Source of the DNA: Tubulanus polymorphus
Lineage: Eukaryota > Animalia > Nemertea
DNA: 64,000 nucleotides
Direction: 5' to 3'
Assembly: GCF_964204645.1 (NCBI RefSeq)
Contig: NC_134032.1
Location: 16,108,275 to 16,172,274, forward strand
How positions within the stretch are numbered: position 1 is the first letter of the stretch; each line of letters starts with the position of its first letter. A program made the position numbers and the translations under genes. The notes under the pieces were generated by a model. It was not told the DNA's origin. It saw nothing but the letters and a program-made list of their open reading frames with translations, and made no database searches. Positions 299 to 12,758 of this stretch are shown here, in pieces.

Positions 299-3200
299 AT
301 GTCGGTAGACTATCGGAATGGTGGCACCGCATCCTACCAAATGAATCCTGATAAACCTTTCAACAACCATGAATTCGACGAAAAAGGCGCCTCCGATACG
401 CCGGTAGGTGACAGAAAAAATGTTTTTCTCGAAAATGTATAATTGTTATTTTGTTTAGTGAAAAAGTTTAAGAATGTCAGGATCCAGTTCCAGTCTGAGA
501 GGATTTCAACTTTATCAAAAAAGAAAAGAGATTTCAGCTCAAAAGTGAACTCTAACTCTGTGAAGTTGGGTCCTGTTGCTGGAAACACAATTTTGTTTTA
601 AATTCGGGTTAACGGAGTCTAATGTATGATTATCATTATCACGATACTATTATCTTATCATACACAGCCTGGACCGACGGTGGTCGAAGACGATGAAGCT
701 GTGAATTCTAAACGAGGAAGTTGTTATTGTACCGGTATGACAGGAGGATGTTTCCACCAGTGTATTCCCGACCCGGATGAAACTAACACAATCGCATACG
801 ATAAAATCAAGGTTCGTGCAATCAATGAATTGAATTCTACAATGTATTATGATGTTGAAATAATTTATGTAAAACAACCGTCCACACGGGCAGATCTATG
901 ATGTAGTCTCGGGGTCCCCCTTGCCTTCCTGTTGAGGTTGCGCCCTTAGCGTCTCGACGAAGATTGTTAAAATTAGACACTTATCCTTTCGGAAATTAGA
1001 ATTAACTGTGAACTCAGGATCCAGTTTCACAGTTGTGAGAGTTGGAGTTAACTTTGAACTCGGGACCCAGTTCCACAGTTGTTAACTGTGAATTAAAGCC
1101 AGTTTTTTTCCTTAATCAAATCCCATTTGAAAAATGTTTTATCCTTTATATAATTTCTATTTTTAGGACCGGAGTTGTTGGTTCAGGATCCCTAAGTTGA
1201 CGATCCGTCTAAACCCTATAGTTACTATTGCGGCGATCGTCTTCATTTGGGGTTTCGTTATTTTCTGTATGTTAAAACCGGACTTAACTGGAGCCGAGTT
1301 CAAAAGATGGAAAATATTCATCACGAAGACCTTCACATGGCTGTATGTCGGATCGCAGGATATCTGGGCTGTGTTTATCATCATAGTCTATTTCAAGGTA
1401 AGATTACGATTTGAAATATTTCGATGAACCGGGATGAAGATCCCCGGGAACTCTTTCGGCTGAAGATTGTGTTCTAGTCGGAGCCCAAACCATCGCTGAG
1501 ATCCATATCCCGATTTCCGAATCAACCATCCCCTGTTTTGATCCCGGCAGCACGTCCAGATATCCACATTCTCCGGGATCCAGGTGACGATTGTTCGACA
1601 CTATATTTCGACTCTGAACATACCCCGGTAATTAACTTTTATTACAGTACGGTCACGTGAAACTCGGTAAAGATGACGACAAACCCGAATATGGTAACGC
1701 GACCTGGTTCACCATGTTGTTCGCTTGTGGTATCGGAGTCGGGTTGTTCTTCTTCGGAGTGGCCGAACCGGTTTGGCATTACGTCCCGGAAGGAGGTGGT
1801 AATCGTTATATGTCGGATAAATCCATGCCGGACAATACTCTGGCTCAGATAGCTATCAACCTGACTTTATACCATTGGGGTAAGTAGTGTTAAACTATGA
1901 TACAGGGATAACCAACCAGCAGTTTCACGAATAACGGTCTAATACCTTATGAAATGATTCAGGCATTCAAATATTCAAAATAACCGTAGAATACCGTATA
2001 AAATGATTCGAAAGTTCATAATAACGGACAAATGATTAATGAGTTACATTGACGTTGTTATTTTTTGTTTTAACAGGTATTCACGGATGGGTCGTGTATT
2101 GTGTAATGGGAATGTTGATGGGTATCGTCTCTTATCGTATGGGTTTACCAATGACTGTTAAATCATGTTTCTATCCTCTACTCGGTGATAAGATATCCGG
2201 CTGGATGGGAGACGCTATCGACGCTTTGTCCATTATCACTACACTGTTCGGTGTCTGTACCAGTTTAGGTTTGGGCACGATTCAACTAAATACCGGACTC
2301 AACTTGATCAACCCTGACATCCCGATTAGCCGTATTAGTCAGATTATCATAATCTGGTGCATCACACTTCTGGCTACAGCCTCCACACTATCCGGTATCG
2401 GGCTGGGAATTCGTCGATTGAGCGAGTTATGTTTCGGAGTTGGAATGGTGATCATGTTGATCGTACTGTTCTTAGACAACACGTGGTACATCATGAATCT
2501 CTACACGCAGAGTATCGGGTTCTACTTCCAGAATATTTTACAACTCGGGTTTCATTGCGACGCCTTTGAACAGATCGGTAAATCTCACGGTGGAGCTGAT
2601 AGAAATAGAGGTCAGTTATCTTTAACCTACTAAATGTTTGATCGAGGAATGAATTGGTTTTTACTGGTTTGTAAAATGTTTTGTTTTCTGTTGCTATAGG
2701 TTACGCGGATGGTGAAACTGATGGACCAGAAATGTGGATGGATTGGTGGACTATTTTCTACTGGGGATGGTGGATCGCTTGGTCTCCTTTTGTCGGTGAG
2801 TTATTTATTAGTTTTATTAGTTCTATGTGGACTGCAGTATGGGACTGCTTGGGCTGCACTTGAGGGGCGTGGCGTAGGGGTCTTTTGTTAGTAGTTTAGG
2901 GCTCAAGGATGCGATGTGGAGCACTGAACTGCAGTATGGGGCTCTGGGCTCCAATCCAGGGCTATGTGGACTGCAGTATGGGACTTAAGCACTGTCCCAG
3001 CTCTGTGAAATGAAATCGGTTTACTATAACCCACTTTTTGATCGAACTGAAATCTTAATTTCAAAAGTCTTCAACGTTTTCCTTCTCTAAATTCAGGAAT
3101 GTTCATCGCTAAAATCTCCAAAGGTCGAACCGTCCGTGAGTTTGTTAACGGTACAATGACAGCGCCGATTATTTATGGATTTTTCTGGATGGTCATATTC

Positions 3201-7023: not shown

Positions 7024-10000
7024 CTACTTAGATTTCAGTTCGATTTGCTCATCGCCATCATCATTAAACTCACCGGGGAACACAGAACTGCCGTGCTCCT
7101 TCATCGTCTCGGACAACTGGTAGGCCAACATCGGATACATAATCGAACAGAACATGTCCTCGATCATGTTACCGTCGATGCTGTACTTGGTTCGCATTGA
7201 AATACGACTAGCGCCAGCTACCGTACAGAATGCAAACAAAAACACACAGCCTATGGCGTACACCTCGTATATACCTAAACTCTTGATACAACCGAGGATT
7301 ACTAGTATCAGGAACGTCAACATGAACGTCGCCATGAATATGGTATAAGTGATCGTGATGCACTGCTTCTTCGTGCTGTTACTTGTGTGCGCCAGGACTG
7401 TGGCAAATGTGTACGGGGCGATGAATATATTAGCCATTACCCAGATGACATTGTGGGCGTTTGGACGCGCTAGAACATCGAACATACCGACCTTAAACTG
7501 TGGTCCGTACGGGTCGCGATTACCACCTTCGACTTCTAGAACGCGCCACAGTGCCACGCATGCAAAACAGATTACTATAGTGAACGGTAAACCTGCCGCA
7601 ACTGATACGGTCTGTAGGGAAGACAGGGCATCTTTTCCGCCTACCCATATCAGCGCAGACGCGGTGGCTCCTTCGGAAAACGCCCAGAATACTCGCTGTA
7701 TACGCGGTGGTTCTTTATCGCCGTTTGCGGCCAGACAATCGATGACGTAAGAACCGCTGTCTGAACTGGTGACGAAATACAAAATGATAGCAATAATCGA
7801 AAAGATTCGTAGAAATCCGGAAATACTTCCGTAAGAATCCATTACGTCGAACCACATTTGTTCCTTCGAATGACAAGATAAACGAGTCAATCTCTTGTCT
7901 TCCAGTTGGACTCCCATTTCCTGCGGTTTTGCGATATTGTTCAATGCGTTCAAACGAGCGATGAACTGAGAGGAATCTGAGTACATGGTCTTCTGGCGGT
8001 TTATAATCTGATTCGAACATGGATTACAAGTGCTGTTAACGCAAAGCCAGTTTCCGATTGGTTGGCCCACGTTTGGATCGGATGTGGTGATGTTGACGTT
8101 AAGATTGTGTCCGCAGCACAGTCCGGCGCCGGCCGCCTCGCGTTCCATTTTGATTCCGATTCCGCCGAATATGACCATCCAGAAAAAAGCGTAAATAATC
8201 GGCGCTGTCATTGTACCGTTAACAAACTCACGGACGGTTCGACCTTTGGAGATTTTAGCGATGAACATTCCTGAAATTAGAGTAAGAAAAAGTTGAAGAC
8301 TTTTAACTTTCTATGAAATACACAAAGGTCACAGAAAGCGATATTCCCGTATCACAGGGCTGAAGCATCCTTACCTTCCCGGCCACGCCCACATTGCATC
8401 CTTGAGCCCTAAACTACTAACAAAAACCCATACGCCACGCCCCTCAAATGCAGCCCAAGCAGTCCCATACTGCAGTCCACATAGCCCTAATTTAAAACCC
8501 AGTGCCCCATACTGCAGTTCAGTGCTCCACATTGCCGACTCGAAAGAGCCGTACATTACGTTCAGATCAGTTCTATATAAAACTAATAAATAACTCACCG
8601 ACAAAAGGAGACCAAGCGATCCACCATCCCCAATAGAAAATAGTCCACCAATCCATCCACAGTTCTGGTCCATCACTTTCACCGTCCGGGTAACCTATAG
8701 CAACAGAAAACAATACATTTTACAAACCAGTAAAAACCAGTAATCAAAATTAACTGTTTATGTAAAGATAACTGACCTCTATTTCTATCAGCTCCACCGT
8801 GAGATTTACCAGCCAGTTCAAAGGCGTCGCAATGAAACCCGAGTTGTAAAAGCCACTGGAAATAGAACCCGATACTCTGCGTGTAGAGATTCATGATGTA
8901 CCACGTGTTGTCTAAGAACAGTACGATCAACATGATCACCATTCCAACTCCGAAACATAACTCGCTCAATCGACGAATTCCCAGCCCGATACCGGATAGT
9001 GTGGAGGCTGTAGCCAGTAGTGTGATGCCCCAGATTATGATAATCTGACTAATACGGCTAATCGGGATGTCAGGGTTGATCAAGTTGAGTCCGGTATTTA
9101 GTTGAATCGTGCCCAAACCTAAACTGGTACAGACACCGAACAGTGTAGTGATAATGGACAAAGCGTCGATAGCGTCTCCCATCCAGCCGAATATCTTATC
9201 ACCGAGTAGAGGATAGAAACATGATTTAACAGTCATTGGTAAACCCATACGATAAGAGACGATACCCATCAACATTCCCATTACACAATACACGACCCAT
9301 CCGTGAATACCTGTTAAAACAAAAAATAACAACGTCAATGTAACTCATTAATCATTTGTCCGTTATTATGAACTTTCGAATCATTTTATACGGTGTTCTA
9401 CGGTTATTTTGAATATTTGAATGCCTGAATCATTTCATAAGGTATTAGACCGTTATTCGTGAAACTGCTGGTTGGTTATCCCTGTATCATAGTTTAACAC
9501 TACTTACCCCAATGGTATAAAGTCAGGTTGATAGCTATCTGAGCCAGAGTATTGTCCGGCATGGATTTATCCGAAATATAGCGATTACCACCACCTTCCG
9601 GGACGTAATGCCAAACCGGTTCGGCCACTCCGAAGAAGAACAACCCGACTCCGATACCACAAGCAAACAACATGGTGAACCAGGTCGCACTGCCGTATTC
9701 GGGTTCGTCGTCATCTTTACCGAGTTTCACGTGACCGTACTGTAATAAATATTGTATTACATTGCATTACGTAAATTAGGTTTATCAGATACAGAGAATT
9801 CACTGGAATATGAATCCCACAAAAGCTTTTTGAAAATCGAAACTGTTAAAATCTATTGAAATAATCCGAATTTTTTGGTTTTACACTAAAAACCATTTTC
9901 AAGGAGTAGCGAATAAATAAAGTCGAAACGTTGAATAAAATGCACTAGCTCAAGGAATACAGTATTCCTGAAGATGACTATTAGGATAAAGTCGAAACGT

Positions 10001-12758
10001 TGAATAAACTACACTAGCTCAAGGAATACAGTATTCCTGAAGATGACTATTAGGATATAGTCGAAACGTTGAATAAACTACACTAGCTCAAGGAATACAG
10101 TATCCCTGAAGATGACTATTAGGATAAAGTCGAGACGCTGAATAAACTACACTAGCTCAAGGAATACAGTATTCCTGAAGATGACTATTAGGATAAAGTC
10201 GAAACGTTGAATAAACTACACTAGCTCAAGGAATACAGTATTCCTGAAGATGACTATTAGGATAAAGTCGAAACGTTGAATAAACTACACTAGCTCAAGG
10301 AATACAGTATTCCTGAAGATGACCATTAGGATAAAGTCGAAACGTTAAATAAACTACACTAGCTCAAGGAATACAGTATTCCTGAAGATGACCATTATGA
10401 AAAAGTCGAAACGTTGAATAAACTACACTAGCTCAAGGAATACAGTATTCCTGAAGATGACTATTAGGATAAAGTCGAAACGTTGAATAAACTACACTAG
10501 CTCAAGGAATACAGTATTCCTGAAGATGACTATTAGGATAAAGTCGAAACGTTGAATAAACTACACTAGCTCAAGGAATAAAGTATTCCTGAAGATGACT
10601 ATTAGGATAAAGTCGAAACGTTGAATAAATTCCACTAGCTCAAGGAATACAGTATTTCTGAAGATGACTATTTGGATAAAGTCGAAACGTTGAATAAACT
10701 CCACTAGCTCAAGGAATACAGTATTCCTGAAGATGACTATCAGGATAAAGTCGAAACGTTGAATAAACTACACTAGCTCAAGGAATACAGTATTCCTGAA
10801 GATGACTATTAGGATATAGTCGAAACGTTGAATAAACTACACTAGCTCAAGGAATACAGTATTCCTGAAGATGACTATTAGGATATAGTCGAAACGTTGA
10901 ATAAACTACACTAGCTCAAGGAATACAGTATTCCTGAAGATGACTATTAGGATATAGTCGAAACGTTGAATAAACTACACTAGCTCAAGGAATACAGTAT
11001 TCCTGAAGATGACTATTAGGATATAGTCGAAACGTTGAATAAACTACACTAGCTCAAGGAATACAGTATTCCTGAAGATGACTATTAGGATATAGTCGAA
11101 ACGTTGAATAAACTACACTAGCTCAAGGAATACAGTATTCCTGAAGATGACTATTAGGATATAGTCGAAACGTTGAATAAACTACACTAGCTCAAGGAAT
11201 ACAGTATTCCTGAAGATGACTATTAGGATATAGTCGAAACGTTGAATAAACTACACTAGCTCAAGGAATACAGTATTCCTGAAGATGACTATTAAGATAT
11301 AGTCGAAACGTTGAATAAACTACACTAGCTCAAGGAATACAGTATTCCTGAAGATGACTATTAGGATAAAGTCGAAACGTTAAATAAACTACACTAGCTC
11401 AAGGAATACAGTATTCCTGAAGATGACTATTAGGATATAGTCGAAACGTTGAATAAACTACACTAGCTCAAGGAATACAGTATTCCTGAAGATGGCAATT
11501 AGGATAAAGTCGAAACGTTGAATAAACTACACTAGCTCAAGGAATACAGTATTCCTGAAGATGACTATTAGGATAAAGTCGAAACGTTGAATAAACTCCA
11601 CTAGCTCAAGGAATACAGTATTCCTGAAGATGACTATCAGGATAAAGTCGAAACGTTGAATAAACTACACTAGCTCAAGGAATACAGTATTCCTGAAGAT
11701 GACTATTAGGATAAAGTCGAAACGTTGAATAAACTACACTAGCTCAAGGAATACAGTATTCCTGAAGATGACTATTAGGATAAAGTCGAAATGTTGAATA
11801 AACTACACTAGCTCAAGGAATACAGTATTCCTGAAGATGACTATTAGGATAAAGTCGAAACGTTGAATAAACTACACTAGCTCAAGGAATGCAGTATTCC
11901 TGAAGATGGCTATTAGGATAAAATCGAAACGTGAATTAAACATAAGCTCCAGGAAACATTTCAGACTCTTGTTCCTTCTTATTTGTGAGATTTCTCAACC
12001 TACCTTTACATAGACGACAACTATGAATAGAGCCCAGATGTCCTGCGATCCAACATAAAGCCAGGTGAAGGTTTTTGTGATGAATACTTTCCACTTTTTG
12101 AATTCGTCCCCGGTCAATTTTGGCTCCAGCATACAGAAAATGACGAACCCCCAAATGAAAACAATCGCGGCGCAGGTGACAATCGGGTTAAAACGAATCC
12201 ATATCTTCGGAATCCGGAACCAGCAACTTCGATCCTGGGGAAAAAATAATCTCAAAATTGGAAAAATGGTAAATTCCTGAACTGAGACTCAATTATCAAA
12301 TCAGTTTTTTTGTATGACATAGGTTAATTTTACAATCATCGACGCCATCTATGGGAATTGTGAACTAAAATTTTAACTAAAATCTTAGTATTGGCACTGT
12401 TCCAATCTTCAGGTGTCTTGCAATTTTAGTAATCTATTATAATTTATTCATGTTTTATATATATTATGATAATTTTTGAAAATTTATTATAAATTATTCA
12501 TTAACAATTTGAATAAATGAAAATAAGTACGAAATTAATGGTTACCTTAATGCTGTCGTATGCGATGATGTCAGTTTGATCCGGGTCGGGAAAACATGTC
12601 TGAAAACATCCTCCGTACATGCCTTGACACCCGCATGCGTCGTCAAGCGGTTCTTTATCCTCGATCACAACAGGTCCGCCATTTCTCTGCGAGTCATTCT
12701 TGTCGTCGGGGCCTTCGTCGTCAATGACGACGGCGTGGTTGTCATGACCGTGCGACAT
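7024..12758 (-). CDS. Spliced BCCT-family transporter, paralog B, ~850 aa, with C-terminal PLAC8-like extension
   Basis: Coding exons 12758-12546, 12234-12004, 9739-9508, 9310-8777, 8694-8599, 8270-7024. Introns are GT-AG, total 2553 nt in frame. Internal exon sizes (231/232/534/96) and BCCT motifs match paralog A. In-frame TGA upstream of the ATG; UTR acceptor near 12892. Confidence 0.93.
9919..11931 (+). repeat. 69-bp tandem satellite, ~29 copies, inside an intron of BCCT paralog B
   Basis: Unit AAAGTCGAAACGTTGAATAAACTACACTAGCTCAAGGAATACAGTATTCCTGAAGATGACTATTAGGAT; GTCG recurs at 9922, 9991, 10060 and onward. Confidence 0.97.
9963..11870 (+). ncRNA. Tandem array of minimal type I hammerhead ribozyme motifs (one per 69-nt unit)
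   Basis: Example 10860-10903: stem I UAUUC, core CUGAAGA-U, stem II GACUAU/AUAGUC with loop UAGGAU, GAAA, palindromic ACGU stem III, U17, stem I' GAAUA. Activity has not been tested. Confidence 0.8.

Follow-up and report, generated by a model that had tools for sequence, protein, structure and literature searches.

Metazoan Penelope-like elements (PLEs) carry minimal hammerhead ribozymes (min-HHRs) in the terminal repeat (pLTR) of an RT + GIY-YIG element (Cervera and de la Pena 2014, PMC4209133); those of Lunse, Weinberg and Breaker (2016/17), as they are represented in PMC6765202, are compared here as the same motif class. The features of these ribozymes, namely a CUGANGA/GAAA/UH core, a G10.1-C11.1 pair, a palindromic 15.2-16.2 without loop 3, a 6-bp helix II and a 5-bp helix I, recur at the locus and in the genome described below, as do inverted pairs 50–1,200 bp apart and direct copies ~3 kb apart. 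Unlike the PLE min-HHRs, however, the motif slice is here trimmed to 69 bp and amplified into arrays of up to ~30 units that lie apart from any ORF. Cleavage by PLE min-HHRs is poor, also when they are dimeric (PMC4209133; PMC6765202), although cleavage assisted by protein was reported for an anole PLE (PMC11167929). Two 3′ ends lying 30–40 nt apart are the signature of a PLE "tail" (PMC11167929).

Metazoan non-LTR retrozymes (Cervera and de la Pena 2020, PMC7229834; Li, Clavereau and Pollet 2026, preprint 10.64898/2026.07.22.740005) are, like the array reported here, tandem repeats that lack ORFs and have a single type I hammerhead in each unit, and they derive from PLE pLTRs (preprint 10.64898/2026.07.22.740005), with multimers enriched towards chromosome ends, again as here. 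Their hammerheads are canonical, with loop-loop contacts, whereas that of our array is of the minimal PLE type; the arrays studied here also differ in bearing a nonrepeated PLE-type 3′ end. Retrozyme units are ~150–450 bp long and their RNAs 170–400 nt. The 69-nt unit falls short of this size, which is reached by the 167-nt parent unit described below, itself just under the lower end of the ~170–400-nt RNA range. An earlier reading of this DNA from its letters (hereafter the sequence-only reading) had regarded 69 nt as unusually minimal; computed retrozyme consensus lengths run from 51 to 972 bp (preprint 10.64898/2026.07.22.740005), so that 69 bp lies inside the described range, although below the experimentally studied RNAs, and that description is not supported.

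A third group comprises the dimer-acting hammerhead satellites, newt satellite 2 and the Schistosoma Sm-alpha/W-elements (PMC8490949), to which the work of Forster et al. (1988), as cited in PMC6765202, also belongs. In these, as in our array, a tandem DNA repeat brings together two hammerheads whose weak helix III allows pairing as a double hammerhead, but the units of those satellites measure a few hundred bp, and both transcripts and cleavage have been demonstrated for them.

Results

The array and its hammerhead motif

Tandem Repeats Finder (TRF), run on the window (the whole 64-kb stretch of DNA analyzed), returned the array as a single tandem repeat with period 69, 29.3 copies, 97% matches and 0 indels (Table 1), in agreement with the ~29 head-to-tail units counted by the sequence-only reading. 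Each unit reads, 5′ to 3′, UAUUC (stem I, 5′ strand), CUGAAGA, an unpaired U, helix II, GAAA, CG, U, U, and GAAUA (stem I, 3′ strand). We wrote a strict min-hammerhead descriptor for the present analysis and applied it to the window, to the reversed sequence and to 200 shuffles. Twenty-two of the 29 complete motifs passed, on the plus strand only, with the core C3-U4-G5-A6-N7-G8-A9, G12-A13-A14, A15.1-U16.1 and H17 present; there were 0 matches elsewhere in the 64 kb, 0 on the minus strand, 0 in the reversed sequence and 0 in the shuffles. Seven units have core or stem mutations, as had been noticed ("a few units"), and the example unit and cleavage site proposed earlier were recovered by the descriptor (Table 1).

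The unit has the traits of PLE min-HHRs: the U after CUGAAGA is unpaired between positions 9 and 10.1, G10.1-C11.1 closes helix II, and 15.2-16.2 is palindromic (ACGU) without loop 3, which agrees with the earlier view that stem III is this palindrome only. Helix I measures 5 bp in the array units, which we counted within the PLE min-HHR range (helix II 6–8 bp, helix I 4–5 bp). Two forms of helix II are present. The ATATAGTC variant, found in 10 units, eight of which are consecutive, has a 6-bp helix II, and the ATAAAGTC variant (17 units) has a helix II of 4 bp followed by an A.A mismatch. Judged from these features, most array units carry a Penelope-type minimal type I hammerhead motif.

The hammerhead search proposed earlier succeeded with the descriptor but not with Rfam: cmscan against the Rfam hammerhead models gave no match at the gathering score or at E <= 10, and only two chance group I intron matches were returned. 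Such an outcome is expected for a motif without a helix III loop, which the Rfam models include, and with an inserted nucleotide. A type III reading, with the upstream hairpin as a closed stem I, was dropped because it would place G at position 17 and A at 16.1.

Table 1 Features of the array and its host intron (window coordinates)
Feature	Position	Strand	Evidence
Host intron, phase 0, GT..AG	9740..12003	-	sequence reading, ORFs, colinear BCCT profile matches
Upstream BCCT exon (ORF part)	12004..12255	-	Pfam PF02028 positions 1-58, E 2.4e-4, 20.2 bits (below the Pfam 27-bit cut-off)
Downstream BCCT exon (ORF part)	9500..9739	-	Pfam PF02028 positions 64-132, E 8e-21, 74.4 bits
Tandem array, 29.3 x 69 nt	9917..11941	+	TRF, unit table, blastn vs. 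PLE
Example hammerhead, spanning both strands of stem I; core at 10865-10898, cleavage predicted 3′ of 10898	10860..10903	+	descriptor scan, sequence
Eight consecutive units (span of cores) with the ancestral PLE-type 6-bp helix II (ATATAGTC)	10796..11312	+	unit table, descriptor; identical form dominant in dispersed PLE copies
Nonrepeated 3′ end of inserted element; homolog of the PLE terminal-repeat 3′ end, short form without the optional 35-nt tail	11942..11997	+	identity comparison, multiple alignment with other arrays' 3′ ends

A parent PLE in the same genome

A search of the genome with a 35-nt pattern of the hammerhead core returned ~2,400 sites, against 0 for a reversed-pattern control. 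The same core lies ~100 nt upstream of an 802-aa RVT_1 + GIY-YIG ORF in 2,858-nt tandem PLE copies, which places it in the terminal repeat of an RT + GIY-YIG element and confirms the Penelope-type assignment made by the sequence-only reading. Each window unit has 54–62 nt in common with the PLE (blastn), mostly at 88–96% identity. The PLE copies stop at two alternative points, +100 or +135 from the core start and 35 nt apart, and the arrays correspondingly finish in a long or a short homologous form, the window array in the short one; this is the PLE "tail" signature. The homology of the satellite to the PLE, its architecture and its genomic distribution are thus directly observed.

One might suppose instead that the satellite is an ordinary one whose monomer happens to fit a small hammerhead consensus, a motif low in information and, as noted, without an Rfam match even at E <= 10. 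This is hardly credible given the same sequence at the canonical pLTR position of an RT + GIY-YIG element, the presence of every family-specific PLE min-HHR trait and the 0 matches in shuffles; homology to the PLE effectively refutes it.

The 6-bp helix II also occurs in the PLE and is the dominant form among dispersed PLE copies. The central block of variant units with an extended stem II, pointed out earlier, therefore stands, now as eight consecutive units, but its polarity is to be reversed: the 6-bp helix is the ancestral PLE form and the 4-bp helix the derived one.

The genome also has a 167-nt tandem family, together with 236-nt (167 + 69) repeats. The 167-nt unit equals one pLTR: it begins ~8 nt before the hammerhead core and extends as far as the 3′ end of the PLE, with which it is colinear at 76% identity. 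The 69-nt unit is the 167-nt unit minus an internal part (~98 nt), which leaves the hammerhead and a 25-nt linker. A pattern specific to the 69-nt junction has 681 + 717 matches in the genome (~1,400). On this comparison, the 69-nt unit is an internal-deletion derivative of the 167-nt PLE pLTR family and most plausibly no stand-alone replicon. The genome-wide search that had been suggested hence yielded both further arrays and a candidate partner, but the ORF-bearing PLE is only 76% identical to the 3′ part of the 167-nt family, and the true autonomous partner may be another lineage. No ORF-bearing PLE with a 167-type 3′ end was present within ~4 kb upstream of six isolated 167-type loci, and the 64-kb window has no PLE ORF.

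Ends, flanks and variants of the arrays

We compared 23 arrays, which are the first exact matches on contigs 1–5 and not a random sample. Their flanks are unrelated in all 23. This bears on the possibility that a single PLE fragment lay in the intron and that slippage and unequal crossing-over made the array locally, without mobilization. DNA-level exchange is indeed visible in the block structure of the window array (eight identical T-variant units, and a double variant recurring 13 units apart), and the preprint 10.64898/2026.07.22.740005 models retrozyme birth as local amplification of a PLE terminus. However, the identical deletion junction of the 69-nt unit recurs ~1,400 times, spread over many arrays whose flanks are unrelated. 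Separate origins at each locus would not produce one and the same junction; the unit therefore existed beforehand, and arrays or, at the least, units have moved. We consider a purely local origin unlikely.

In 16 of the 23 arrays the start falls within the same 11 nt of the 69-nt unit's phase, and ~11 arrays, the window array included, run on into a nonrepeated homolog of the PLE 3′ end. In the window this sequence (11933 to ~12002) matches the consensus of the 167-nt family at 84% identity and the short 3′ end of the PLE at 83%. A 69-nt circle is unable to encode such a nonrepeated end, and this end, taken with the preferred start phase, suggests that the copied molecules were linear [69]n + 3′ end transcripts rather than 69-nt circles. 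The 3′ end of the window array is short (about 55 nt at 84% identity), and no more than about half of the arrays sampled have a recognizable one; a recombination hotspot, instead of an RNA 5′ end, could also account for the clustered 5′ phases.

Array-specific variants common to several units include A14>C (five times) and C11.1>G (four times); variants expected to inactivate the hammerhead have been amplified within arrays. In the genomic copies, conservation of the core does not exceed that of the spacer, and among 152 units from the 23 arrays there was no signal of purifying selection on the catalytic core (1.64 vs. 1.0 distinct events per position, P = 0.13). Some arrays (L008, L021) have alternating two-unit patterns. 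Among contig ends near arrays, a telomere repeat, (CCCTAA)n, is found at the left end of contig 8 but, in the present assembly, neither at its right end nor at the ends of contig 3.

Predicted folding and reads

The double-hammerhead fold has a predicted energy of −12.3 kcal/mol for the T variant and −4.5 kcal/mol for the A variant, against minima of −25.1 and −18.5 kcal/mol, respectively. The dimeric active fold thus lies 13–14 kcal/mol above the predicted minimum, being disfavored by a hairpin from the deletion junction that sequesters the 5′ strand of stem I together with C3 and U4; these nearest-neighbor energies leave out tertiary contacts and protein assistance. In the literature, eight of nine predicted retrozyme dimers showed no cleavage in vitro. 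If the plus strand is transcribed, its cleavage could be no more than weak and would take a dimer or the help of a protein; we infer that self-cleavage of the array RNA would be weak or absent. A search for RNA sequencing runs containing the stretch found none, and the only run that contains it is of unrecorded kind. Over 9400–12400 its contigs cover the unique intron flanks at a depth of 23–60 and the repeat words at up to ~150,000. The run is DNA-like and gives no RNA ends.

The sequence-only reading had proposed a self-standing replicon, an ultra-small retrozyme whose plus strand is transcribed and whose adjacent units, as double hammerheads, release 69-nt monomers that are circularized and reverse-transcribed by rolling circle into new arrays. 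In favor of this, 22 of 29 units have the complete motif, the tandem layout provides the dimer needed by min-HHRs, the alternating patterns of L008 and L021 would suit rolling-circle copying of dimeric circles, and known metazoan retrozymes work in this way at 170–400 nt (PMC7229834). Against this stand the derivation of the unit by deletion from the 167-nt family, the PLE-type 3′ end in which about half of the arrays finish, the amplified variants expected to kill the hammerhead, the energetic cost of the active fold with its deletion-junction hairpin, and the failure of eight of nine predicted dimers in vitro. We regard such a replicon as quite improbable.

Host gene and insertion site

The array is intronic and antisense to its host gene, as the sequence-only reading had it; this is a BCCT transporter gene, minus-strand ORFs of which flank the array. 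The profile match of the upstream exon is weak and is colinear with the stronger match of the next exon (Table 1). The inserted element occupies 92% of the host intron and ends 6 nt from the donor site; no target-site duplication was seen at the insertion. With the element antisense and the 6-nt donor site intact, the insertion looks harmless to the BCCT gene.

Discussion

Our preferred reading, to which we assign a probability of roughly 0.8, is that the array belongs, as a single copy, to a non-autonomous family that arose from a PLE pLTR, with a 167-nt parent and a 69-nt deletion sub-unit, copied as linear transcripts by a PLE enzyme. The parent would have been a tandem 167-nt unit equal to one pLTR; loss of ~98 internal nt would have given the 69-nt sub-unit, which was amplified in tandem, with the hammerhead motif inherited from the PLE. 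Linear [69]n + 3′ end transcripts were most likely copied to new sites by PLE reverse transcriptase/endonuclease, starting near the 3′ end, and one copy would have landed antisense, 6 nt inside the BCCT intron, where its atypical 5′ start suggests truncation. Afterwards the window array was probably remodeled by unequal exchange between DNA copies. Mobilization by the PLE enzyme and DNA-level expansion are what we infer from this pattern. The satellite is PLE-derived and non-LTR retrozyme-like, a kind of element that is already known.

A more speculative reading, which we rate as a long shot, is a "minimized" retrozyme in which the deletion variant, reduced to scarcely more than the hammerhead, out-replicated its 167-nt parent by rolling-circle copying and is processed in vivo, with a PLE protein or a chaperone, into 69-nt linear or circular RNAs. 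If true, it would be the smallest natural hammerhead replicon known.

An origin of retrozymes from PLE pLTRs has been proposed for vertebrates, with invertebrates stated as not examined (preprint 10.64898/2026.07.22.740005). New here are the derivation of 69 from 167 nt and the argument from the 3′ end. The locus offers a clean invertebrate example of a PLE terminal repeat becoming a hammerhead-bearing satellite, and a single genome shows all three stages: the complete PLE, a tandem repeat consisting of the pLTR alone (167 nt) and the sub-repeat of 69 nt. From the nonrepeated 3′ end and the 5′ phase favored by the arrays it can be argued, in a testable way, that arrays of this type spread when the PLE enzyme copies linear multimers of RNA, and not as monomer circles.

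The tandem array and its hammerhead motif

When the array was cut in register, its units read UAUUC (stem I, 5′ strand), CUGAAGA, an unpaired U, helix II as GACU(AU)...(AU)AGUC, GAAA, CG, U, U and GAAUA (stem I, 3′ strand). This register and the Tandem Repeats Finder (TRF) result bear out the unit order and tandem arrangement of the sequence-only reading, whose example hammerhead, with predicted cleavage after 10898, was also placed correctly (see table). Our descriptor, a strict one, follows the definition published for Penelope-type minimal hammerheads (core; optional nucleotide after A9; helix II of ≥4 bp closed by G...C; Watson-Crick 15.2-16.2; U16.1; H17; helix I of ≥4 bp). It was passed by 22 of the 29 complete motifs in the array, every one on the plus strand, with 0 matches in the rest of the 64 kb, on the minus strand, in the reversed sequence, or in 200 shuffles. 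Helix II has 6 bp in 10 units (T variant) and a 4-bp form with an A.A mismatch in 17 (A variant); core or stem mutations, noted earlier in a few units, were found in seven. The hammerhead-bearing tandem array is thus a real observation. Rfam hammerhead models gave no match even at E ≤ 10, which fits a motif without loop 3 and with an inserted nucleotide.

The weaker of the two BCCT transporter matches is colinear with the stronger, and the splice junctions AAG/GTAGGT and TTATTACAG/TAC therefore define an intron, 92% of which is occupied by the repeat and its 3′ end, antisense to the gene. The intronic, antisense placement proposed from sequence accordingly stands on the BCCT ORFs, the junctions and the intron. 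The inserted element leaves exactly 6 intron nucleotides (11998-12003) on the donor side, and the GTAGGT donor is intact; minus the insertion, the intron would measure ~183 nt.

Features of the array and its host gene (window coordinates)
Feature	Position	Strand	Basis or remark
BCCT ORF part, profile positions 64-132	9500-9739	−	Pfam BCCT, 74.4 bits
Host intron, phase 0	9740-12003	−	Read from splice junctions
69-nt tandem array	9917-11941	+	TRF: single array, 29.3 copies, 97% matches, 0 indels
Example hammerhead core	10865-10898	+	Predicted cut after 10898
Array 3′ end, short form	11933 to ~12002	+	84% identity to family consensus; stops 6 nt from splice donor
BCCT ORF part, profile positions 1-58	12004-12255	−	Pfam BCCT, 20.2 bits, under Pfam cut-off
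AT-rich 10-nt microsatellite	12430-12498		6.9 copies, 70%

A Penelope-like element as the source of the motif

Across the 268-Mb genome, a 35-nt core pattern had 1,239 + 1,181 matches and the reversed-pattern control 0. Most matches are isolated sites, members of inverted pairs (50-1,200 bp apart) or direct copies spaced 2,858 bp; the direct copies are tandem Penelope-like elements (PLEs), in which an 802-aa ORF with RVT_1 and GIY-YIG domains begins ~100 nt downstream of the hammerhead. One such locus (L001, contig 2, 15724000-15733999) holds at least three head-to-tail copies spaced 2,858 nt, one 802-aa RT + GIY-YIG ORF being intact and its neighbours interrupted at 621 and 409 aa; at two others (L002, L003), inverted head-to-head PLE 5′ ends meet a few nucleotides upstream of the hammerhead. 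PLE copies end at either of two points 35 nt apart (+100 or +135 from core start), which are the optional "tail" signature that Frangieh et al. connect with reverse transcription starting internally (PMC11167929). Every trait listed by Cervera and de la Peña (PMC4209133) as separating PLE minimal hammerheads from chance matches was present (G10.1-C11.1; palindromic 15.2-16.2; long helix II and short helix I; terminal-repeat location; inverted pairs; copies ~3 kb apart), which makes the motif, by its sequence, a genuine member of that family. Each window unit has 54-62 nt in common with the PLE, mostly at 88-96% identity; no other PLE parts were found in the window.

Derivation of the 69-nt unit from a 167-nt family

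A pattern across the junction specific to the 69-nt unit matched 681 + 717 times genome-wide. On contigs 1 and 2, all listed exact matches fall in the last 1.2 Mb of the contig, and the window lies on contig 8, ~0.5 Mb short of its right end. Nineteen further loci yielded 22 more arrays (23 with the window's), and conserved non-repeated sequence continues on the 3′ side of about half of them. A search with this sequence gave 118 + 84 matches, many at 167- or 236-nt spacing; TRF confirmed a 167-nt tandem family (10.9 copies, 98%, in L026, contig 8, 371500-374500) together with 236-nt repeats that correspond to 167 + 69. From ~8 nt upstream of the core through the tailed 3′ end, the 167-nt consensus runs colinear with the PLE, at an identity of 76% beyond the cleavage site on its downstream side and almost complete over the hammerhead; the unit is therefore one PLE terminal repeat (pLTR) without the ORF. 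No PLE ORF was found within ~4 kb upstream of six isolated 167-type loci, so the family is non-autonomous. The 69-nt unit is the 167-nt unit minus ~98 internal nt, and the composite 236-nt repeats (L027, 598-1690; L030, 587-1278) are intermediates between the two.

The 167-nt units, with one minimal hammerhead each, span 605-2417 of L026 and recur in L027, L028, L029, L031 and L032; they cluster towards the left end of contig 8, within ~2.3 Mb of the (CCCTAA)n telomere that forms this end. A 60-nt tandem repeat unrelated to these units (L027, 1-342; 5.7 copies, 97%) adjoins a 167/236-nt array. The right end of contig 8 (L040) carries 39-40-nt tandem repeats (803-1128 and 2979-3066) and no telomere repeat in the assembly.

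Spread and amplification of the arrays

The sequence-only reading proposed a minimal ribozyme replicon, in which a plus-strand transcript self-processes into 69-nt monomers or circles. Flanks are unrelated in all 23 arrays; 16 of the 23 start inside one 11-nt phase window of the 69-nt unit (~3.7 expected), corresponding to the 5′ beginning of the 167-nt unit, and a PLE-type 3′ end, long or short, terminates ~11. The atypical start phase of the window's array suggests 5′ truncation. Because a 69-nt circle lacks the PLE-type 3′ end, arrays carrying that end would need a linear template. The architecture points to spread by copying of linear [69]n + 3′ end templates, which, in the manner of PLE enzymes, probably began close to the 3′ end. 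Target-site duplications were not observed.

The evidence also says that amplification does not require an active ribozyme, since variants expected to be inactive have been amplified, the core is no more conserved than the spacer, and the window array has a block structure. Array-specific variants are common to several units in several arrays (A14>C in 5/5 units of one, C11.1>G in 4 units of another), and C11.1>G is in the hammerhead of most sampled 167-nt monomers; both changes are expected to inactivate the ribozyme by established hammerhead rules. Independent changes are no fewer per core position than per spacer position (1.64 vs. 1.0, p = 0.13; 152 units, 23 arrays). In the window's array, eight T-variant units are identical and one double variant recurs 13 units apart, a block structure that points to DNA-level exchange.

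The deletion junction yields a 7-bp hairpin (AGGAAUA/UAUUCCU) predicted to tie up C3 and U4 along with the 5′ strand of stem I. Tertiary contacts and proteins left aside, the double-hammerhead fold has −12.3 kcal/mol (T variant) and −4.5 (A variant), with minima of −25.1 and −18.5. These unfavourable predicted energies agree with the literature: PLE minimal hammerheads cleave poorly even as dimers (PMC4209133; PMC6765202), that of an anole PLE required the PLE protein (PMC11167929), and 8/9 predicted Xenopus retrozyme dimers did not cleave. Contigs of the sole public run matching the array stretch also span the unique flanks of the intron, at the depth of single-copy sequence, and the run is therefore DNA-like. 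Given the PLE-type 3′ ends, the amplified variants expected to be inactive and the 167-to-69 derivation, the replicon is not supported, and we put its probability at about 7-8%.

Relation to known elements

The closest known systems are PLE minimal hammerheads and metazoan non-LTR retrozymes; for the latter, a 2026 preprint proposes descent from PLE pLTRs and gives consensus lengths of 51-972 bp (10.64898/2026.07.22.740005). Retrozymes studied experimentally measure 170-400 nt (PMC7229834), a range outside which the 69-nt unit falls; by its architecture, the locus belongs to this kind. New here are the derivation of the 69-nt from the 167-nt unit, the reasoning based on the 3′ end and 5′ phase of the arrays, and the amplification of variants predicted to be dead.
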